64,000 bases of DNA from Trichoplax adhaerens. Lineage: Eukaryota > Animalia > Placozoa. Positions 8,160-63,658 of the stretch are shown in pieces. Both the position numbers and the translations under genes were made by a program. The notes under the pieces were generated by a model. That model made no database searches. It saw only the letters and a program-made list of their open reading frames with translations, and was not told the origin of the DNA. The stretch lies in NCBI RefSeq assembly GCF_000150275.1, contig NW_002060947.1, positions 480,695 through 544,694 of the forward strand, given 5' to 3'. How positions within the stretch are numbered: position 1 is the stretch's first letter; every line of letters begins with the position of its first letter.

Positions 8160-10853
8160 ATGTCCGCACAAGAGGTATCGGATATCGATCAAGTACTCCA
8201 TCAATTACAAAAATCAGTGGACGCTGGTGCACGTTCCGTCAACAGTAAACTATTGAAACAGTTACAACAAGCGTTGGATGAAGTTGACAATCATAAGATT
8301 AAACGTTCAATTTCTTTTATCTTGGATGTTGTGAAAGATGGTAAATCACAGGCTTGGTTGTGGCAAGTGGCCCGAGTGGTACGTTTATGCTTACTTAGAC
8401 ATTTGAAGGAAAGACGATTGGATGAACCAACGGTGAAATGTTATCGATCACTATGCGAAGAAATTGCGATAGTCTTTGGTATTTTAGATTCCAATATAGG
8501 TTACCATAAATCCCGACAATTATCAATCATGCCGCCTTACCTCTTATACTATGAGTTACGAATTATTGAGCAACAGTTGGCTGATTGCATCGATGAACAA
8601 TCCGACTTGGTTTTTGCACCTTTCAATCCAATTTATATTAGTGTCCAAGACTTAATCAATTGTTATGATAACAACGAAGATCCAAATGGTGTCCAAATGG
8701 ATCAAATACGACCAAGACAGAATAAATTTCAAGATATTTTATGGGAGTTGTGTGGTTTTCGAAATAACAACCCCTTCGATTTACGTATCTACCTCACTTT
8801 AGATCTTCTTTCTACTCTCCTGCTACAATGTGAACATAATCAGACTATTATACAAAAAATTGCTTACCTTAAAATTAATTATAATGCTTTTGCAGTGGAC
8901 GAAAATCAATTTACCTATGGTTTACAGGATTACTTGAATCAGTTATTAAACGACGTGGATAATACTGATCGTCACAATGCTAACTATAATCCTCAAAGGC
9001 TCATTGTTAAATATGTCGAAGATGCTACTAAATTATTACGCCTCAACGATCAATTATCTCCTTCTATTTCAGCCAGTTTACGAGCTGATCTAAAACTAGT
9101 CTTAACCAAAGCGTCTACGCCCTATTTAAATCGTGCACTCAGTCATCTTGATTTAGAAACAGAAGAGAACCTCAATGCAAACACAAGTAATAATAACCTC
9201 GATCAAATCGATGGTAACATCAACAACGAACTGTTAGTACTCTCCTTGCCCAATTTACCTCAACCTTGTATAGGACGAAAGGAAGAACTTAGCTTAATCG
9301 ATCAGCAAATATCTCAAACGGATAAATGGTCCATTTCACAGGTCGCAATTACCGGCTTAGGCGGTGCAGGGAAAACCTATGTTGCTCTTCAGTATGCTCG
9401 TACGTGCCTTGAAAGGCAACGTTACAATATTGTCTATTGGATCCATTCGGAAACTGTATTATCACTACAAAGTAGCCTAATAAGTTTGACCTATGAAATG
9501 GCTAGCAAGTTATCTCTAGATCAAGATCGATCTATTAAGGCTTTGTGTGAAGAAGTTAACAATGATCCTCAAGGGCGACCCATTTTATCATCGTATATGA
9601 ATAACCAGATATTAACGGCCATAGGTTCTAACGATCGTGTTCAAAATATCATTAGTAAATGCCGTCAGGTAATACAACATTCACGCCAACTCAACTTTCT
9701 ATTAATCTATGACAATGCCGACAATATTGAAATGGTTTCTAGTTATATACCGTCTTGTGGTAACTGTCATATTATAATAACATCTAGAAATAGGAACTGG
9801 CCTAATGCTATTGACATTGGCCCCTTCGATAGGCCAACATCGATTTGCTATTTATCCAACGAATTAACTAAGAGCGCCATATACCAACATCATCCTTTAG
9901 ATGAAGACCTGTTGGATAAATTATCTGATCAGTTAGGCGATTTACCATTAGCGTTATCGCATGCAACTAGATATATCATTCAAAATAAATACACGATCGA
10001 AAAATATATGGATTCATTTGAAAAAGAGCGTAGCCAACTATGGCATATTAAATATGCTCCAGATGAGTACAAACAGTACGGGCAATCAGAGCAAGAACAT
10101 TCGCAAGAACATTCGCAAGTAATCGCCCAAAAGAAGACTATCAGGACAACCTGGACTATATCTATGGATTCATTGCGTAAGAACGAAGAAATGTGCTATT
10201 ATATCATGCAATATCTTGCATATTTACGGCCGGATAATATTCCCAAGTGTTTAATTATTGATTTAACGAATTTTATCAGGAACAGTTGGTATTGGTATTT
10301 TCGTGAATTGTTACGTAAAGTTAATTTTAATAGTAAGAAGGACAAAGAAAATGTTCAACATTATATTGACATATTAGTAGACTATTCATTTTTATATGCC
10401 TACGATGACAATTATTCTATTCATCGATTATTACAACAGACTTTGCGCGATAAGAATAAAGTTGAAAAGCGACATAGTAAAATTTTATATACGCTATTGT
10501 CGTTTTTTGATAGTCAAGCTGAAATAGGGGTCGACTTGTCGATGCATGCATACCAATGCTGCAAATACACTACTAAAGATACCAAGTTATCAGCTGTACG
10601 GTCAAGTGTTCTTAAAAAAGTTAAACTTGCAGTCAAGTCTAACCCTTCCGATGCAGAAATTGCTGGTGATCTTGAATTTGATTTAATAACTAATATCGAA
10701 CGAATGAGCGATGAATTCAATAACAAATATTCCAGTAAGGATGAAACAACATCGAAAAGGATCTTTGGCAACTTAAGCCCATATATGACAACAACAATGT
10801 TGTTACCGCCATTAACCTTAATATGCGTGTTGATCATATTTAAAAGGGCGTAG
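8160..10853 (+). CDS. Intronless STAND NTPase (NB-ARC/AP-ATPase class, NLR-like), 897 aa, with helical N-terminal domain and C-terminal hydrophobic tail
   Basis: Pre-P-loop CIGRKEEL, Walker A GLGGAGKT (9354-9377), IVYWIHSE, Walker B LLIYDNAD, sensor-1 IIITSR, GxP motif LGDLPLAL, and winged-helix MHD-like YSIHRLLQQ. Ends MLLPPLTLICVLIIFKRA. Confidence 0.92.
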   Translation: MSAQEVSDIDQVLHQLQKSVDAGARSVNSKLLKQLQQALDEVDNHKIKRSISFILDVVKDGKSQAWLWQVARVVRLCLLRHLKERRLDEPTVKCYRSLCEEIAIVFGILDSNIGYHKSRQLSIMPPYLLYYELRIIEQQLADCIDEQSDLVFAPFNPIYISVQDLINCYDNNEDPNGVQMDQIRPRQNKFQDILWELCGFRNNNPFDLRIYLTLDLLSTLLLQCEHNQTIIQKIAYLKINYNAFAVDENQFTYGLQDYLNQLLNDVDNTDRHNANYNPQRLIVKYVEDATKLLRLNDQLSPSISASLRADLKLVLTKASTPYLNRALSHLDLETEENLNANTSNNNLDQIDGNINNELLVLSLPNLPQPCIGRKEELSLIDQQISQTDKWSISQVAITGLGGAGKTYVALQYARTCLERQRYNIVYWIHSETVLSLQSSLISLTYEMASKLSLDQDRSIKALCEEVNNDPQGRPILSSYMNNQILTAIGSNDRVQNIISKCRQVIQHSRQLNFLLIYDNADNIEMVSSYIPSCGNCHIIITSRNRNWPNAIDIGPFDRPTSICYLSNELTKSAIYQHHPLDEDLLDKLSDQLGDLPLALSHATRYIIQNKYTIEKYMDSFEKERSQLWHIKYAPDEYKQYGQSEQEHSQEHSQVIAQKKTIRTTWTISMDSLRKNEEMCYYIMQYLAYLRPDNIPKCLIIDLTNFIRNSWYWYFRELLRKVNFNSKKDKENVQHYIDILVDYSFLYAYDDNYSIHRLLQQTLRDKNKVEKRHSKILYTLLSFFDSQAEIGVDLSMHAYQCCKYTTKDTKLSAVRSSVLKKVKLAVKSNPSDAEIAGDLEFDLITNIERMSDEFNNKYSSKDETTSKRIFGNLSPYMTTTMLLPPLTLICVLIIFKRA

Positions 10854-15791: not shown

Positions 15792-18301
15792 ATGAAGTCG
15801 ATATGGAGGCGCTGGACAGTATCGAATAAAACGACACCAAAGGCTATCTCATTTTACTCTCATTCCAATGGCGATATTACCGCAGAGGTTATCTCATCTC
15901 CCTCGAATTCCAACGACGCTATTTCTAACAACAGCACGCCAAAGGTTTTCGCAGGTCGTTCCAATTCCAAGCGCGACGTGACCGCAAAGGCTATCTTATC
16001 TCACTCTAATTTCAAGGACGATATTTCTAATAGCACTAGGCCAAAGGTTTCCTCATCTCATCCTGATTTCAACCACAACATTCCTAATAGCACTAGGCCA
16101 AAGCTTTCCTCATCTCACTCTGATTTCAACCACGACATTCCTAATAGCACTAGGCCAAAGCTTTCCTCATCTCACTCTGATTCCAACCACGACATTTCTA
16201 ATAGCACTAGGCCAAAGCTTTCCTCATCTCACTCTCATTCCAACCACGACATTTCTGATAGTACTACACCAGAGGTTATCTCAGCTTACTCTAAATCCGA
16301 TAATACTACACCAGAGGTTGTCTTATGTCACTCCGATTCCGATAATGACATTGCCTACGGCAAGAAATTAGAAGTACACTTGAAAGAGCTCGGTGTAAGG
16401 GTTTTCAGAACTGATAAATCACTCACTCCAGGAAAGTCCATAAGTGCAGAATTTGGTAGACTTGCTCAGAAGCTCTTTATCTTTATTTTAAGCGGACACA
16501 TTTTTACCCGTGCGAATAACTGGCTAGATCATGTTTTATCACTTAAAAGCGATGAAGCTGATCCTTCAGCTAGTACAAACAGGGGACTCGATGATATTGT
16601 TATAATTCCTGTTCTACGTATGCCAAGTCATGAATTCGATCGCTATTGCCGCCCTAGCTTAAGTAATTTAAACAAAATCGAAGGTTTAAGAGGGCCCTCA
16701 AGCGTTGCCGATATTGTACATCATATTCTACAGGAAGGTAACAGTATTGACAATAATACTAATAGTGAAATTTGCTTTGCACAATTTTCTATCCAAGTAG
16801 ATACCTATCTTAATCGTAATCAACTGATTTTGACTAATTTTTATTACATTAAATAATAATGCTATAACTCACTATTTGCAATATCATGCTATACAATTTC
16901 AATAACCAACATTCAGTATCCTGCCTTGATAACAATGCAAATTAGCTGTTGTTGATACTAGCAGAAGCTTTCTGCTGGTTACAATTTAATGCCCCGACTT
17001 GAGTAGACTAAGTTAAATATTACTGTAGCTCCTATTTGAGATATTTTGAAATGTGTTGGCATATTGTGATGGATGCCCTTGTAGAAATTGGCGTTTCGTC
17101 TCCATCGATTGATTAACTATGCCTATTAATATCAGTTGTTTGATAGAATGGACGTGTTTGTGCGCTTGTTAGAGGACTACATCATAACGCAGCTTTAATT
17201 AATTCTAATACCTATAGTACAAAAATGCGTTAGTTTGAAGGGCAAGACTCTACGACTGGTGGGATTACATAGTAACCTCACGGAGTATTTTACTGCAATT
17301 AGTCTTACAGATGGATTTGTAATATCTTTCTCACGCGTCCATTGAAACTATTTTATCAGAGACAAGATTTATTTGCAGTTACGCTTGAAATGAATACCTT
17401 ATATTACAAGTTGCGATAGCAATAATTTCATGAAATATCAAAAATTTCTCTTATATTCTTTTCAATTTTTTTTGCAGTATTTGCAGGTATAATTTAAGAG
17501 TGGTTTAAAATACAGCTTGCGAGCTTATAGATTGAAAATTTTTTAATGTTTTTCCTGCCAACTTATTCAATTTTTAGGAAGTACAAGTAGTAATTTTGCA
17601 CCTTGGCTATCCCAATATCTTCGTAATCGAAAGGGTCAAGGTATTCGATATTCTAGGAGTTAATTCCTACCAACGCAATTTTGCTGCATCGATAAGTCAG
17701 TTTAGAATGTCAAGAGATGTTACAATTGAGGATATCATTAAAGTAGAAGATGAAACAATCTGAATAATAATTTGTAACTGACATTAATTCAACACTATAT
17801 TAAAAAAAACTTATTGGAACGGGTAGAATTCACTAGTTATTACAAAAAACTTCTTAGATTAATAAAATAATTTTTATAACTTTCCTATTCTATTCACGCA
17901 TAGAGTTACCCAAGGGTATACAATACGATGTATTTGTTACCTATCAAGAAAAAACAGAATACGTACAAGCATTAGTGGGAAAACTGCGCTCAGATTGGTT
18001 CAGTTTAAAGGTCTACGATAAAAAGCTAGAAGGTTTAACACACTCTCTTATTGAGCCAACAATTGAGAAATCGGCTAAGATTTTGGTCATTTTAAACGGC
18101 AATTTTAACTCTGTAAAGTGGCAGAATCATTATCAACCATGGATAAAGTATCATAAAAAAACTGCTCAAGTTACGTGTATACTATGTGATCCAGAAAAAT
18201 TTTCAAGATTAAGTGAGACCGTTTTTGCAAAGGCGCAGCGCATTGACTGGAATGATGCCTACCTATACGAAACGTTGTATAAAAGATTACGGGAACAGTA
18301 A
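15792..18301 (+). CDS. Tandem-TIR-domain protein with Ser/His/Asn-rich N-terminal repeats; exons 15792-16737, (17478-17486 possible micro-exon), 17578-17640, 17904-18301
   Basis: TIR1: PEVVLCHSDSD...KKLEVHLKELGVRVFRTDKSLTPGKSISAEF...FIFILSGHIF...NNW...VIIPVL. TIR2: QYDVFVTYQEK...LVGKL...LKVY...IEKSAKILVILNGNF..VKW...IDWND..LYETLYKRL. All introns are GT-AG and phase 1, preserving frame. Confidence 0.8.
15830..16352 (+). repeat. Coding tandem repeat, 45-60-bp units, about 11 copies (core 60-bp x4 nearly perfect at 16020-16260)
   Basis: ATTTCTAATAGCACTAGGCCAAAGCTTTCCTCATCTCACTCTGATTCCAACCACGAC repeated, encoding ISNSTRPKLSSSHSDSNHD. Confidence 0.93.
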
Positions 18302-54300: not shown

Positions 54301-54562
54301 TAGCGCTTGATATATTAAGTTGATAGAGTTACGATAAATATCTAATAAACTGGTATAGGCGGGTAGATTAAATTTGTGTATTAAGTTAATTCTGGTACAT
54401 AACTTCGTTTAAAGGAATTAAGGATCTAATGTTGATTTCATGGCATACTGTACGGAACTTGTGATCGAACACTCTTTAATTTATCACTTGGATAATCATA
54501 GAGTTGAATTGGCAGCGGTAGTTTTATGAGAAAATATCTCAATGTATTCTTTAAATGGCCTC

Positions 54563-57500
54563 TCATGGTAACGGAGGAAAATTGAGCTTCTTAAACAGAT
54601 CTTCGGGTATATCTGGTAACTTGTCATCTTCGATCAAGAAGGAAGAAATATTAATTAAATCGACAAAAACTCGGAGCCTTTCCCTGTAATATAATAAAAT
54701 AATTATAATAACTATTAGTAAAAGTTCGAAACATAAGCCAATATGTTAATTTGTAAAGTAACAAGTAATGCTGCAAGTATCTCTGCTGTATCAGCTCTTA
54801 ATTGAATGTAACTCTATTTTAATTTACCCTGTGGTTGCTTTTAAATAAGTATAGCCGGAAGTCTGCGCCAAGCCAGATTTGTTACCTATGATTTTATGCA
54901 CCATGGCTGCATGGCTCACTATATTTTCATAAAATTAGTATTGGTAGTTATGTTGACATACGAGTGAGATGCAGTAATACATACGAGTACATGGATATAT
55001 TGCGCTAAAAATATCGTAAAATATTATGCAAATATTAGTTGATGGACGTTATAACTCGAAATTTTTAACGAGAAAAATTAAAAATTACTACAAGAAAACG
55101 AAACATTGTGAGTTTACTGTCGGGTTTTTTCTTTCTGATATCAACCTCTAATACTTATAAATTCTCCATCATCAGGAGGAAAAGTAACCAATAGTCTCAC
55201 TTAAGTCAAAACTGAACTCAGACATTATTGCAAAATCAGTTAGTTTATCGTGCAGTCACAATAACGTGAGCAATCAGTACTTAGATAATAATATAAAACT
55301 AAGCTATTATCTATTCAAAGTATACAAGACATCATAGATAAATTAATATCGATATATTACTCGATGAGTAATTTTGCGAAAACTATCGTATGGTTACTAC
55401 GCAATAGTTACTCCGTAAGAACGGGTGATAAAAATTCTAAAGATAAAGCTGCATCGTCGCAAATTTTCTGTTAGTAATCTTGTAATAGAGAGCAAAGCAC
55501 TGAAACTTTCATAGTCAAATTCTTATCGAATATAGACTGTTTATAAGAAAGTACTTAAACCTTCATTGACAGATGAAGAGATATCTAACAGCCTAACAAA
55601 CATTAGCTACAGATTTACGCTATTCAACTATACAGCATTTTTATTAATAAAATTGATAACGTCTAAGTAAAATTTAAACTTCTCCTTGACCCTTACGTTC
55701 ATTTTATAAAACCGAACAGTATTACGAGATTAAATATTAGATACTGTTAATATAGATACACTTTTAATATGTAGACAAGCACTATTTCGGCTAATCATAT
55801 ATTTTTAGGAATCTCTGTAGAAGAATATTATATTAAGTAGCATTCCACGTAACATTAAAAAAGATCTAACGTATAGAATTGTGTTATGGCAGTATATTTA
55901 AATACCATTTGTAGATATTTATAACGGCTAAAATAAATGCAGTGCCTATCGCTTATATAATTATTAATCGCGAAAGAACAAAAATTCATAATGAAGATAT
56001 CGTATCGATTAATGAAGCTCAACTAAATTTGGTTATAAAATATTATATGATGATGAATAGCTTAACTTACAACGAAATTCAAGAATTGCTTGATCTAAGT
56101 CCTGCAATAAATTTATAATCATGAAAGGCACTTGAAATCGCATCTCATACCTAAGATTTTTCAAAGTAATAAAAAATTCATAATTTTAGTAGTGACAAGT
56201 ATTGTTAAAGTATCTGTCTTAAGATCACAAACCTATAACGATAGATTGCGATAACAGCTCTAAAGGCCTGCAGAGAAAAATTTCTTTCTCCTTAAAAAAA
56301 AGTAATCATTGCTAATGTATTGGCTAAGAGTTTTCTAAACTAAATACAAGTTTTCGTAGAAGACTTAAATCAATGACTATTCATCCATCTATAAGAGAAG
56401 CACTCAATATAAAGCAGAACCATACAATTTTTACCTCTTTCTATGCAAGCTTTGTGCTTTTCTGGATCAAATAATGAATCATACCATCTCTGTAGAAATA
56501 ATATCGTAATGTGGAAGTTACGTATTAGGCAAAAGTGGTACGATATGTTTTTGCCCGATGGCCATAATATAAGACTAATTTTAGTTCTGAATAACAGGTG
56601 AGTTCGTTTTAAATTGACTATCATCATTGTCAAAAATTCTTTTCGCTACAAATATCCGAAATGATACAAAGTACCTGCTACATGTATTATTCCATATTGC
56701 TTTTATCTCTTAATATTACTAACTTAAAATATATCATCAAATAAATTCATTGAGCTACCTCCATCTTTTCGCACTCTCTAATTGAATCAACTTTTTCTTC
56801 ACTGTCGTCGTTTCTCTGCTGATATAAGTTTATAGATAATAAATATTAGTAATTGCAGTGAGGCGAAGTAAATCATATAGTGAGTAGAGTACGCTAATTT
56901 AGTCATTAGGATACCTCCGCTATTTCGCGATTAGCTTTTAACATCGCTGTTACAACATTTGTAAATTTTTTCCAGAAATTGTCTTTATGGAACACGAACT
57001 GTATCACCTTGCTATTTTCCAACCAAAGCTAAAAATGTCAAGCGTGCATGATGGCGCAAGGAAATTGCAAACAGTATTAGAAAATGAAGTTTCTCACATA
57101 ATTTAAGCAACGATTCAATCTGGATTCTATCTGGAATATATGCTACAATTGCTATCTAATAGTCCGATTGCAGCTATATGATCAGCCTACTTCTACTACA
57201 TCACGAAGAGAAGACTTGTTTTCTTCAGCCATAACAGATTCTTGATCATATTCTGCAAGCTCTTCACTATTAAGAATGAATTGAAGAGAACTAATGGTTT
57301 TCTAATATCACAAGGCATAATACATGTTATTAAATTTTTTCCTGTTCAAATTCAGTTGTATAAGTTATAGTACGATACAATTCATTATGGCCAGAGATTT
57401 GTCCTTAAGATATTAAATAATTAAAATAAATTATCGATAAATCATAGTTACAAGTATTGCTTTCGTTTTGACTGGATTCTGCAACCCTGTTAATGGTTAG

Positions 57501-60500
57501 ATGATAAAATGATGTCAAAAAATGAATAACTCATATTTTCAAAATTATGAGTTCATATTATTGCAGTACTAAGCAAATCTGCGCACAACATGTCGATAGC
57601 TAGACATTTTCATTTAAGGGAATGAAAAAAGAAAATAGCTATTCACAATATTAAAGTAATATGCTTATAGGTTTCAATATCGAAATTACTTTCATCGACA
57701 ACAGTTCATACTGTAATAATAATGCGCTCATGTTATAGAAATATAAATTCATTTTGAAAGAGCCTAAATTGTAAATATTCTAACTATTCAATATATTATA
57801 GAGTAAAACTAATTTATTCAGCTAAAATAGTCTTTCAAAATATTGTAATCAGCTATATTATGAACTGATAAATTCACGTTAAGATTACTAATTGAGTAAT
57901 TTACCCTTTTTAGTCCTAGTTTATTCTCCAATAGCCGAAAATTTTTACTTTGAAAACCTGAGCCACGACCAAGAGTAGATCTAGTCGGTTTAGTTTATAA
58001 GCATTATTTTTACTATTTTACCGAATTACTAGTAAGACGTCTTGGAATTCTATTAATATCTAAAATTCTAAAGTCCATTGAGCATACGAGTTCATACGTT
58101 CAACCACAATATATCTTACTTACCTGAATTCAAAAAATTCCACTGTGTGCATTGTATTTAAAATGGCTACTTCATTGCTTACTAACTATTAGATATAATG
58201 AAAAGTTAGTAAGCGAAGGATTATAATATCAATTTAATACATATTTTCTTTTTAATGTGTGGTGCGGCTCTCAAAAATAGCTTTATAGATTGTGGAAAAT
58301 CGCTAAGTGATATGCAAAATTGTAAGATTGATACTATAAGTCCGAGATTGTAGATTAACTTGAAATTCAAGATTGTGTCAATTGGGTATTCGTGCTGAAT
58401 GGCTACAGAAAATATTGCAGCTTTGATTAGGAATTGCTTATTAAAGTGGTTGATAACTAGAGACTATGCGAGTAATTTGATGCTAGATTACTCCAAAATT
58501 ATAGATATAGTTAGATCATAATGTAAATAAGGTGAAGATTTCTTCTCCCGCACTTAATTAGTCTTGTTCTTAATTGAAGAAGTAGATTGCATAGATAAAA
58601 TGAACATCATAAATTATCGAATTATTGATCATTTCTAATTTTAAGACGCTTTATCATGTAATATATTACTGCATTTGTATTTCTCTATAGATAAGTGCCA
58701 CGATATTGATTTTAGTGCGTAACAATATTACAGATCTAAAATGTAGGTAAAATTTAGAATTACTCCATATAACTGCTCTTCTTCGATATCGTATATAATT
58801 TATGTGTGAACTTCAGGTCAGACTGTAATCTTATGGTAATTAATCTCGTGTTATGTGGGTATAATAAGGTGTTTTAAAGTATAAAGTTATAATGCATGTT
58901 TCAGGTCTCAGGATATTCGAAAACTAGTATCATTAATTAATGTTAACGTACATGTATACTTGTATATGCAAGTAAAAGTTCAAATCTGGTAACTTATACA
59001 CTCTTGTAACTGCTCGCAAGTAAGTTAAAAGATATATCAGCGGACTACTTCTTGGAACGAAAAAATCCTGTTTTTGAAAACGCTTAAGCCAATAAGCCTG
59101 CTTTTCATTACCATTACAGGCATTTCTAGTGTTACTATAGTCGAGGCAATATCATGATATAGAAGAAATAAATCGGTCACTTTTTTAGAATATTAGAAGA
59201 TAGATTGATTTTGATTTCAATCCTTTGCTTTATCATTGCATAATTAGTAGCGATATGGCTTTACCTCAAAATTTAGACTAATAGCAAAACCTGGGCTTGC
59301 ACAGCTTTTGCTGGAATTTTATTTAAGGTAGCTAGTGACTATAATATTCATTGGCGATAAGTTTATTATGTAATATGTATCAGCATTAAATTTTGTACTG
59401 AAACTAAAATCTGTTTTGCCTAAGATAAACAAGGTCCAGTACTATCTGTTACGTAGTTATACGATAATCTATAAAACATTTGATGTACTTTAATAAATTC
59501 AATATCTTGGTATTAGCTATTGCTATTCTGCATACTAGTAGCAAATTATCGATATGCGATAATATGATTTATAGAACCATTCATTCACGTCATTATAGTA
59601 GACTTCAACAACTCTTCTAATTGCATTAGAATAAATCGTTATTAAAAGACATATTAGATTATATAGATGAATATTTCTGAATTGAATTACAGATTCCATC
59701 TTTAATTTGTAATAATTAGCGACCGACCTATGCGTGGTTAACTTTTGTTCCTTCTGAAAAGTTAGTAGTACTAATTGAAGATATCTTTGTGCAGATTACT
59801 ACAGTTATATATGCAGTTTTTTGTAATATTTTGGTGATTACAATGGGATCAATGTACTACATATCCTTCATCTCATAGAATTAATAATTAACGATCGATT
59901 TTCCTGTGTGAGCTATTCCTGATAAATAAGTAGTTAACATCGATATCTGTTATTGTTGCGGTTAAAATTAATCGTAACATTATCGCGCTTAGATATTGTT
60001 ATCGTCACGGTATTAATAGTGATATTTTCTGTTCGAACTTGATGTAATATTATTACAATTAAAATACATTTACCTGTTGCATTTTTACTGTAGAAGGTTT
60101 GGAAATTAACCATAAAGCTCTATGGATCATGTATATATTGCATTGATGTTATATATATACATCACGGGAAATAATGGGTGTTAACTTAAAGTATAATTTG
60201 ATATTAACCTCAGATACATTTTTTGTTGTCATGATTGAGATTAATCGAGATATATGCTCTTCTAAAGACTGCATAGTGAGAATAAATATGATTACTTCTA
60301 AACAAATTACTAAACAGCATGCTGAGGAAGATTTATTAAATAATAGGCGAGAATTTTCCTGTTTTAACTTCGTCTCTTACAACATATGCTTTTCAATCGC
60401 TTAGTAAAACAATTACGAATGATAATAATGATACGTATTTGAAAATGAATACTGTTTAGATAATTTACAATCTAATATAGAAATTAGCTACCTTCAGAAT

Positions 60501-63500
60501 TTCACAACATCGTCTTAGTCTTCTAACAATATCAAGTCCCTTTCTTTCATCTTTCATCTAAAGATATTGCAAAAATAATATGATACAAAATGATTTAATA
60601 TTTTCAATCATTCAATTTTTAAGCTACAAAGGTAGCGTATCACTTAATATGCTATTTATTTGTATGTTAGAATATCTGTAAAATTGACTTTTGCAATTCG
60701 TAGTGTATTGATTTTGAAATTATACATAGTAGCAAAAAATTGATCAAATACTAGTCATACTTGTATTGGTAATCGTAATACACATATACTTACAATCTGT
60801 TGAAATAACTCCTTTATAGAATCGATTTCATGATTCAGCTGGCGAAGCCATAATTCAATCACTTAGAAAAAAAGCGAATCTTTTTAATTACGGTACCTAT
60901 ATCATACTCCTGAACCAAAATGTCTACCGTAATATCGATATCGGTATACATCATAAATTAATATCAATTTGTTATTGAGAAAATTTCGAAAATAAGTACA
61001 CTAACATGCTGTAAATCTTAATATGCAGTAGGATAGTAAAGTTGTGTAGACGTATATTCGAACATAATTCAACCAAGGCGTATCCGCTAAGTTCGAGTAG
61101 GTCATGGGTAGTATCATCAGGCATAGTGGTATATTGAATTATTAATATTAACCCAGTTTAATACAGATAGATCGACATAGCATTGGATAAATCTCCTTAT
61201 TCATTATGCAATACTTGCATAGCCGCAACAACGCTTAGTAGCATATTTAAATACGAGTATACTATCACATATAATGTAGCCACTAACATACTAACATCAT
61301 TAGTATGTACTTAAATATAATATTTTCGTATAATTAAAAACACATAGCCTGAAAGCTATTTGTAATAATAAAGAAACTATGATAAAAATAACATTAATAT
61401 ATCGTACAAAGGAAACGTAGTTATCATCGGCATTAGAGCAAGATTCCGCTTGAATAAACTATTTCTTTTGATATTTTGGCCTCAATGAGCCGTCAAGCTA
61501 ACATAAAATTGAAGAAGTTATTTTGAGACCCATCATTGAAACATAAGCAATTAAACGTAAAAATCACGTGGCTACTTTCGCACAGAAAGCGGATATCTGA
61601 ATAGTTGATTATTGAACGTTTTAGATTGCAGAAATTTTCTAATATTTCTATATGCGGGATGCACAATACTATCTATCTGGTAACTATTTACTATGCATGA
61701 AGATGAAATTAATTAAAATTTAGTACCAAGTTATTATACTATTGCTTAAATTCTATTATTTCTAGATTGTATACTAATCAAAATAAAATGTGATTACCTG
61801 CACCTATATTATTAACGTTCCCTATCATTTTAATTTAAGGGATAATGTAAGACCGTTAAATTTCTATCATGACAAAATTATAATATTTTTAAGCTTTCTT
61901 GACGATGCTCCTTCATCAATTTTATTACTTATTTTAAATGATTAAAGCTCTATAGAAGTCGAATATTAATACATGGGATAGGTCAAGACACTGCTTGCAT
62001 AGTTTTGGTGATCTTTAAAAATTGTTTTCGTTATATACAGTAAAGGAATAAAGAGAGAGTTAAGGATCTCAGTTGGTTCTTCTATTCATTCACATATTTG
62101 CTTATAAAAGCATAGTCGGTCTCTTAGGACTTAGAATTGTGTAAAAATTTATAATATTTTAATTTGATTATAATTAAAAGAGTTATTGACTTGTTTATTT
62201 TGATCTCTTAAGATGTAACTGTACAATTCTTATCGGTAAAAGGCCATCTTGTGCTTAAAATTTTTAATAATCAGTATGACCTTATAGTTTAATTCAAAGC
62301 AGGGAAATACTATCTTGCACGCCATTAAGGTTGACAGTAATAAGATGTTTTACGGTAGGCATACGTATTATTATGAAGTACCACAAACAATTTGAATCAA
62401 AGATAACGAAGAAGAGTTTTAAGCATCGATAGAACTAGGTTCACGGTTAATTCTTCATGTTTTTATAAATACTTTTATCCAGAAAACAATCATTCTGACT
62501 CCAAAGTAAAATATTAGACATAGATAAGTGATTAATAGCCATTAAATCAGCGTTTAAATTATTGTAAAGTAGGCCGAAAGCAACTAGTTAGCAATACCAA
62601 TAAATGCAGCTTAGATATAAATTGATTTTAGCAGTATCCATACTTTTATAAATTAAGTCTACGAGAAGATACGATTTAGAACACTGAATAGTTTGTAGCA
62701 GGTTAATATTTGTCAATATCTCATTCATGTTGGATAGTTGATAAAGTATATTAAGCGTATAAATCCTGTCTCAAGTCAAAGTTAATCTTATCTAATATTC
62801 AATGGTTATAGTATCACAACATCGCTTATAATCTAAAAGCTGGTCATGAATGACTTGGAATTAAATGATAGGAACCGTTGATACTATAGATGTGAGTGAG
62901 CATTAGTAAGACTATATCGATTATGTCTATTTTTTTGATTGCGAAAGCTAAATTGCAAAGACTGCATCTAAAACGTTGAGTAATGGAATACTTTAGGAAT
63001 ACTATTGAAATTGGATCGTACTAAACTGTGAGAAATGACGATAGACTATAAAGAATATCGTTTAATAAAACAGCTATAGTAAAGTTCCCGTTTCAAATGA
63101 AAGGGTATATATTCTACACAAAGCAATATATTAAAATGAAAATTTACAGCTAGATTATTTCTTACTACTGTATATATATGCTTACTAAGGTAAAAATTAT
63201 AAGCGGTAGGACGTACAAGACGATTAATCTTGGTTTCGAACACGACTTATCATTTGATAATTGTCATTACTAACTGCACGTAATAAAATCAAAGGCTACT
63301 GTATTAGAGCACTCTTATTAAATATAGCTGTATTTTTATTAATCATGCCTTCCAGATAGGCCTTAATTATATTTCCATTGCTATTAAGACTTGACAATCT
63401 TACCTTGGTGAGCAGTAACAAAAAAAAGTTCATGATGCGAAGGCAGACGATTTGTTTTATGTTCATCATTGAATGCTTTTGTAGGTGAACAATAACAGGA

Positions 63501-63658
63501 TAGCAGTCTTTTGGGCTATTAAATAAACGTTACCAACAAATTATTTGGATAAATTCTGAATCACTATAAAGTAATACGAATTAAAGGGAATTTTATAGAT
63601 AACAGCTATTACCTGCATGATTTTGTCGTATTCAGTCTTATCAGAACCATTCTCTTGA
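54563..63658 (-). CDS. TDO2: Divergent tryptophan 2,3-dioxygenase (TDO2/vermilion family) homologue; 15 exons reconstructed, start exon uncertain
   Basis: Exons 63613-63658, 63404-63515, 60794-60861, 60492-60557, 58124-58185, 57905-57980, 57452-57486, 57191-57290, 56915-57028, 56759-56818, 56435-56489, 56233-56290, 56071-56150, 54828-54918 and 54563-54683 are all GT-AG, phase-compatible and stop-free. They give HHELFFVTAHQVIELWLRQLNHEIDSI, TMHTVEFFEFRSTLGRGSGFQSKNFRLLENKLG, SLFDPEKH...GERNFS, RFQVPF, SHAAMVHKIIGNK...SGYTYL and RVFVDLINISSFLI. A possible start MAYPF at 63751 does not splice cleanly. Confidence 0.93.

Follow-up and report, generated by a model that had tools for sequence, protein, structure and literature searches.

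The GTGGS loop is the conserved lid of indoleamine 2,3-dioxygenase (IDO) as well as of tryptophan 2,3-dioxygenase (TDO) (PMC12312684). In human TDO its threonine, Thr342, hydrogen-bonds the amino group of the substrate and contributes to the preference for L over D, while Tyr42 and Tyr45 are supplied by the neighbouring subunit, their alanine mutants showing about 0.5% and 1.1% activity, respectively (PMC8518741). A second reference point is MarE, a bacterial TDO-like monooxygenase that forms 2-oxindole and whose SLGGR lid does not bind the amine (PMC11904535). Work on both enzymes indicated that the loop, which in MarE has Leu at the Thr342 position, steers the reaction between di- and mono-oxygenation (PMC12312684, PMC11904535): human TDO in which GTGGS was changed to SLGGS showed a lower dioxygenation efficiency and gave about 5% of mono-oxygenated product and about 95% of N-formylkynurenine, and MarE carrying the GTGGS loop displayed up to four-fold higher dioxygenation (PMC12312684). 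Among animals, TDOs are reported to be highly conserved, and the known duplicates, from zebrafish and sea urchin, to be similar in activity (PMC4191572). The gene considered here is a member of this family from the placozoan Trichoplax adhaerens whose lid reads GLAQT. It occupies positions 54563-63658, on the minus strand, of a stretch of 64,000 nucleotides of contig NW_002060947.1 (480,695 to 544,694 of the forward strand), denoted here as the window, and it will be referred to as the target. The roles that a previous sequence-only reading of this locus had assigned to Thr342, Tyr42/Tyr45 and the GTGGS lid agree with the published work (PMC8518741, PMC11904535, PMC12312684). No publication dealing with TDO paralogues of placozoans turned up in a literature search, and nothing relevant was found on sequence networks of the heme-dependent aromatic oxygenases (HDAO).

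The target consists of 15 exons with 372 stop-free codons, and its surroundings are AT-rich (about 30% G+C). Its heme ligation and its indole and carboxylate pocket look preserved, whereas the amine clamp and the lid hinge have been lost and look unconstrained. The reading that we favour, and to which we give about even credence, is that the target would be a functional, lineage-restricted TDO paralogue with the histidine-ligated HDAO fold, a heme oxygenase that is still active but recognises the amine differently or differs in the outcome of the reaction. The assignment to the family comes from exons searched singly, which were joined only for local translation, alignment and the estimation of dN/dS (the ratio of nonsynonymous to synonymous divergence). 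The profile PF03301 matched exons 3, 6 and 14 in colinear order with 12.7, 29.6 and 19.6 bits, an exon-wise sum of about 62 bits in which every single exon lies below the curated cut-off of 34.9 bits. When exon 14 was compared with all PDB chains, only tryptophan 2,3-dioxygenases were matched, among them human TDO (5TI9, 4PW8 and others, E = 2.6e-4, 29 residues).

In this last alignment the proximal His of the target, which is also present in the orthologue described below, falls on His328 of human TDO, and GLAQT lies opposite GTGGS, so that Thr342, Gly343, Gly344 and Ser345 are replaced by Leu, Ala, Gln and Thr. The SGFQS motif (57947-57961) aligns to the human PASGFQS, with Ser151-Gly152 kept and Pro149-Ala150 replaced by Arg-Gly, turning PASG into RGSG. 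Exon 2 and exon 5, each searched alone against PDB, yielded no match; as both are too diverged for such matches, models of two paralogues (A and B, see below) were built and the translations were aligned locally. The equivalents of the distal Phe72 and His76 are kept in an ungapped alignment to the canonical paralogue, whose own distal-pocket exon aligns to solved TDOs, and the intron phase there is shared. The Phe140 equivalent is kept in the alignment to A and B, and so is that of Arg144, whose codon (58124-58125 plus 57980) is interrupted by a phase-2 intron that the target, A and B have in common. The paralogue alignment also shows that YDKIM contains the Tyr42 equivalent and has Ile in place of Tyr45, and that in EFR the Arg of the canonical KWR is kept while Trp324 is replaced by Phe. 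According to these alignments, what is lost in the target is the amine-clamping Thr (Leu here, Ile in the orthologue), the glycine hinge of GTGGS, Tyr45 and the Pro-Ala of PASG. The sequence-only reading had listed as retained the proximal heme His, F72/H76, the carboxylate-binding R144 and SGFQS, and as altered GTGGS (to GLAQT, at coordinates that proved exact), YGNYL (to YDKIM, with Y45 lost) and KWR (to EFR), and every one of these residues was recovered in the comparison with human TDO chains or with the paralogues.

Evidence that the gene is used came from the contigs of two RNA-seq runs of one study (X4 and X5), placed on positions 54500-60499. Ten introns could be read directly from these contigs, appearing as CT..AC on the plus strand and corresponding to GT..AG for a minus-strand gene. 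An eleventh junction, between exons 4 and 5, was provided by the loose end of a 1,618-nt X5 contig, which leaves the reference at 58187 and resumes at 60494 with one mismatch in 30. The three junctions further upstream were predicted from GT-AG borders, reading frame and homology, and they receive indirect support because the leftover 293 nt of the contig match the predicted exon sizes (64 + 68 + 112 + 46) plus 3 nt. Compared with the reference, the RNA contigs show four differences over the exons, two synonymous and two nonsynonymous. An X4 contig spans the GLAQT exon with 0 differences, and no variants are listed for this exon in four runs, one of them deep, DNA-like and carrying the same species label; an assembly error as the source of GLAQT was thereby ruled out. 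The gene is thus real, transcribed and correctly spliced. The claim of a frame-intact 15-exon gene holds, given the 372 open codons, the GT-AG introns and the junctions read from RNA, and the two tests that had been proposed for it, the presence of transcripts and the agreement of reads with the loop, came out in its favour, with spliced transcripts in both runs.

A further line of evidence was obtained when exon 14 was used to search 1.84 billion cluster representatives. The single match was P0001, an open reading frame (ORF) of 67 residues with 69% identity; no annotated protein with this exon was found in that search, in which a query of 31 residues would put canonical TDOs below the threshold and which therefore says little about distant kin. 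P0001 resides on three short, AT-rich metagenome/Logan contigs (L018-L020). They contain an orthologue's final four exons, which match the target in intron phases, keep the His ligand and reach the stop after the same residue. Because this gene structure is shared, we infer that the donor is another placozoan lineage. A metagenome scan with the frame of the last exon gave no match, and word searches with the open frames of exons 2 and 6 yielded no candidate either, a result that carries no information given the length filter that applied to them. Orthologue and target are 61% identical, with pN and pS (nonsynonymous and synonymous differences per site) of 0.23 and 0.64 and a dN/dS of about 0.19 over 115 codons, dS being near saturation. 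The C-terminal third of the protein is under purifying selection, and the dN/dS test put forward by the sequence-only reading, for which a value near 1 would have pointed to a young pseudogene, gave a value far from it; that candidate was discarded, also considering that the orthologue ends at the same stop.

These data bear on the proposal that the target is a pseudogene, still transcribed and at an early stage of decay, or that GLAQT is an error of the assembly, which has been largely refuted and which we regard as very improbable. It could draw on the lack of an in-frame start codon in the range 54563-63658 and on an out-of-frame ATG (63648-63650), and it is opposed by the 372 open codons over 15 exons, by the dN/dS of 0.19 relative to an orthologue that is deeply diverged and ends at the same stop, and by an exon that is identical in RNA contigs and variant-free in the deep DNA-like run.

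The lid itself behaves differently from its surroundings. In the orthologue it reads GIGKS, with Ile at the Thr342 position where the target has Leu, so that this position is hydrophobic in both, and only one of the five loop residues is common to the two proteins, while the next 12 residues are identical. A loop that diverges beside 12 identical residues suggests that the old lid contacts are seemingly unconstrained and the fold is constrained. The same pattern, an unconstrained lid on a conserved scaffold, would also fit a non-catalytic protein binding heme or tryptophan, which might serve as a sensor or join the canonical enzyme in mixed tetramers as a regulatory subunit. We consider this quite unlikely: although the N-terminal arm that completes the pocket of the neighbouring subunit is altered and possibly absent, and although one paralogue (B) has lost the proximal His, which indicates that catalytic decay does occur in this gene family, the target retains SGFQS and the Arg together with the distal Phe and the catalytic distal His.

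The paralogues were found in a six-frame scan of the 105.6 Mb assembly (1,414 contigs) with the PF03301 profile. The scan recovered two exons of the target and, at a distance of about 285 kb on its scaffold (C1410), two more genes of the TDO family, and it gave no matches outside that scaffold. The several placozoan TDO paralogues mentioned by the sequence-only reading are, in this genome, three genes on C1410. Copy A is canonical and keeps GTGGS. Its start is also uncertain, since its open frame extends upstream of the first ATG. Copy B, the tandem neighbour of A, has Leu at the position of the proximal heme His, and in place of GTGGS it has a lid shorter by one residue; this copy could be a duplicate that is decaying or that lacks heme. 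Local alignment of the translations gave identities of 53% between B and A, 35% between the target and A, and 28% between the target and B, and 13 intron positions with their phases are common to the target and the paralogues. On PF03301 the lid exon of A scores 48.4 bits, versus 15.6 to 19.6 bits for that of the target. Elsewhere in the genome, a gene for 3-hydroxyanthranilate 3,4-dioxygenase is found on the minus strand of scaffold C1411 (2357917-2358803; PF06052, two exons with 112.9 and 79.9 bits), and IDO (PF01231) had no match in the genome, a weak negative since the control genomes gave no match either. With a canonical TDO and a 3-hydroxyanthranilate dioxygenase present, the kynurenine route does not need the target copy.

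A different view of the same data is that the target is an ordinary L-tryptophan 2,3-dioxygenase isozyme in which the changes in the loop are tolerated, and which is set apart from A chiefly by its kinetics, its regulation or the cell type. This view, which we rate as somewhat unlikely, gains from the presence in the target of all the residues whose mutation abolishes the activity of human TDO (His328, His76, Phe72 and Arg144), from the mostly normal product of the human SLGGS variant (PMC12312684) and from the similar activities reported for the zebrafish TDO paralogues (PMC4191572). It has to accommodate, in turn, that four of the five positions of a lid conserved in TDO and IDO are changed, and are different again in the orthologue, that Tyr45 is Ile when the Tyr45Ala mutant has about 1% activity (PMC8518741), that identity to the canonical copy is 35%, and that the lid exon falls about 30 bits below the canonical one on the family profile.

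In the favoured reading, that of an oxygenase still active but changed in how it recognises the amine or in what it produces, heme would still be bound, the indole-carboxylate would be held in the distal pocket and O2 would be activated, but the alpha-amino group would no longer be read as in canonical TDO. Two outcomes can be envisaged. In the first, the enzyme would accept Trp-like indoles in which the amine is missing or modified, or which differ in stereochemistry; in the second, mono-oxygenation would gain weight, as in MarE with its SLGGR lid. Copy A, with its GTGGS loop, would keep the kynurenine-pathway role.

Several points weigh against this interpretation. The SLGGS variant of human TDO, with its approximately 95% of N-formylkynurenine, means that the loop alone is no proof of a new specificity, and ordinary activity may survive in the target as well. 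The variation of the loop between orthologues also fits a lid without importance, as in a non-catalytic protein. The positions of the distal His and of the Arg depend on the alignment to paralogues, the PDB searches of those exons having been blank, and the orthologue covers four of the 15 exons, with dS near saturation. Whether the Tyr42 segment of the N-terminal arm is translated depends on which of two candidate starts is used. Finally, heme binding, fold and chemistry are attributed to the target at the level of sequence. The proposal of the sequence-only reading that the enzyme acts on a different substrate has therefore fared unevenly: an intact, expressed and conserved gene that keeps the heme residues and has lost GTGGS and Tyr45 is in line with it, while the change of substrate itself is unproven in view of the SLGGS result, and the list of candidate substrates that accompanied it is speculation.

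The features that make up the gene model, together with the paralogues, are collected in the following table.

Exons of the target (window positions) and members of the TDO family on scaffold C1410
Feature	Position	Strand	Remarks
Exon 1	63613..63658	-	Begins at last base of a split codon; YDKIM 63616-63630; preceded by AG, then GT; open frame
Exon 2	63404..63515	-	Distal Phe 63420-63422, His 63408-63410; GT-AG and frame
Exon 3	60794..60861	-	Helix after distal His; PF03301 positions 55-74, 12.7 bits; GT-AG and frame
Exon 4	60492..60557	-	Exon 4/5 junction from RNA contig end
Exon 5	58124..58185	-	Phe140 equivalent and first two bases of the Arg144-equivalent codon; RNA joint 57980/58124; paralogue alignment
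Exon 6	57905..57980	-	Third base of the Arg codon, followed by RGSGFQS; RNA joints; PF03301 positions 120-142, 29.6 bits
Exon 7	57452..57486	-	RNA joints 57486/57905 and 57266/57452
Exon 8	57191..57266	-	RNA joints
Exon 9	56915..57028	-	RNA joints; pieces of X4 and X5 contigs on the exon
Exon 10	56759..56818	-	RNA joints
Exon 11	56435..56489	-	RNA joints
Exon 12	56233..56290	-	RNA joints; orthologous exon on L018
Exon 13	56071..56150	-	Ends in EFR (56072-56080; canonical KWR); RNA joints; orthologue exon on L018 has NFR
Exon 14	54828..54918	-	Proximal His 54911-54913; GLAQT 54860-54874; PF03301 positions 302-328, 19.6 bits
Exon 15, coding part	54563..54683	-	Stop 54563-54565; RNA joint 54683/54828; 3' untranslated region downstream, contig runs past 54500
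Target, whole	window 54563-63658	-	372 codons; GLAQT; His kept
A, canonical	C1410:828478-832422	+	14 exons, 351 codons; GTGGS intact
B, tandem neighbour of A	C1410:836550-841796	+	375 codons; intact frame; same exon structure

Within this model, exon 1 aligns to exon 1 of both paralogues; its boundary is predicted, and the length of the RNA contig agrees with the predicted exon sizes to within 3 nt. The intron phase of exon 2 is common to A and B, and this exon carries, after the N-terminal arm, an insertion of 12 residues relative to the paralogues that includes Cys-Tyr-Cys. The intron between exons 6 and 7 (57487-57904) is extra, having no counterpart in A or B. The His ligand and the GLAQT loop are contained in an open frame of the ORF list (54824-54919, minus strand).

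The 5' end deserves separate consideration. Exons and motifs lie where the sequence-only reading had placed them within 54563-63658, but an in-frame ATG upstream of YDKIM is absent from that range; the nearest ATG (63648-63650), which is located inside exon 1, has a strong context and is out of frame. The RNA contig ends about 3 nt past the AG that precedes exon 1, and a stop so close to a splice acceptor fits a branch of the assembly graph better than a transcription start. Translation could start at the Met of YDKIM or in an exon lying upstream, and the latter, as a short coding exon, is thus favoured. None of the start exons listed as possible stood out as decisive; an 11-nt initiator exon about 420 nt upstream, just past the end of the window (window-equivalent 64082-64092), with a good start context and a GTAGGT donor, is something that we only infer. 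With the Met of YDKIM as the start, the Tyr42 segment would be missing from the protein.

Two other ORFs were observed elsewhere in the window, both on the plus strand. The first (8160-10853) is intron-less, encodes 897 residues and contains a region resembling the P-loop of NB-ARC/STAND NTPases, at a sub-threshold 22.3 bits versus a cut-off of 23.5. The second (15792-16856) encodes 354 residues; after its Ser/Asn/His-rich repeats comes a match to TIR_2 that stays below the threshold (21.9 bits versus 28). The proximity of a TIR_2-like to an NB-ARC-like ORF suggests that this may be an immune-type gene neighbourhood.

The favoured reading can be carried one step further, to an animal indole oxygenase derived from TDO that would be blind to the alpha-amino group and would mono-oxygenate or cleave indoles with a missing or modified amine. 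We hold this more specific version, with substrates such as indole-propionate, indole-lactate, and N-substituted or D-tryptophan derived from food bacteria or algae, to be unlikely. If true, it would give the MarE-type branch of the HDAO, known from bacteria, its first counterpart among metazoans. The target contrasts with the published picture of an animal TDO that is unusually conserved, with duplicates of the same activity (PMC4191572) and an invariant lid (PMC12312684). As an expressed and selectively maintained paralogue with a rewritten lid, it represents a natural version of the loop swaps performed in vitro between MarE and TDO, and the target could show how the lid controls both the choice of substrate and the balance between di- and mono-oxygenation. 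It may also hint at an indole chemistry beyond the kynurenine pathway in one of the simplest animals.

Among the known systems, the target can first be compared with the canonical metazoan TDO, as represented by human TDO2 (5TI9/5TIA) and by copy A. It shares with them the colinear pieces of PF03301 and, with A, 13 intron positions and phases. Equivalents of Phe140, Arg144 and Ser151-Gly152 are likewise kept, as are the proximal His, the two distal residues (Phe and His) and, provided that its segment is translated, Tyr42. The target departs from them in GLAQT for GTGGS, Ile for Tyr45, RGSG for PASG and EFR for KWR, and also in the 12-residue insertion, the additional intron and an identity to A of 35%. 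The duplicates of zebrafish and sea urchin (PMC4191572) resemble it as lineage-specific duplications of an animal TDO gene, but they are reported to be highly conserved and similar in activity, whereas in the target the lid is rewritten. Paralogue B has in common with the target the family, the exon structure, an intact frame and the replacement of GTGGS; the two differ in that B, with Leu for the proximal His, arose from A by a recent duplication (53%), while the target retains the His and has diverged much further. MarE (PDB 9CA3), for its part, offers the His ligand, a TDO-like HDAO fold, which the target is predicted to adopt, and a lid other than GTGGS with Leu at the Thr342 position. Its loop, in contrast, keeps the two Gly that are Ala-Gln in the target, and it has DATG where the target has RGSG, so that the signature formed by SLGGR and DATG is not found in the target. 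MarE is, moreover, a bacterial enzyme of antibiotic biosynthesis, and its kinship with the target is known at the level of the shared family.

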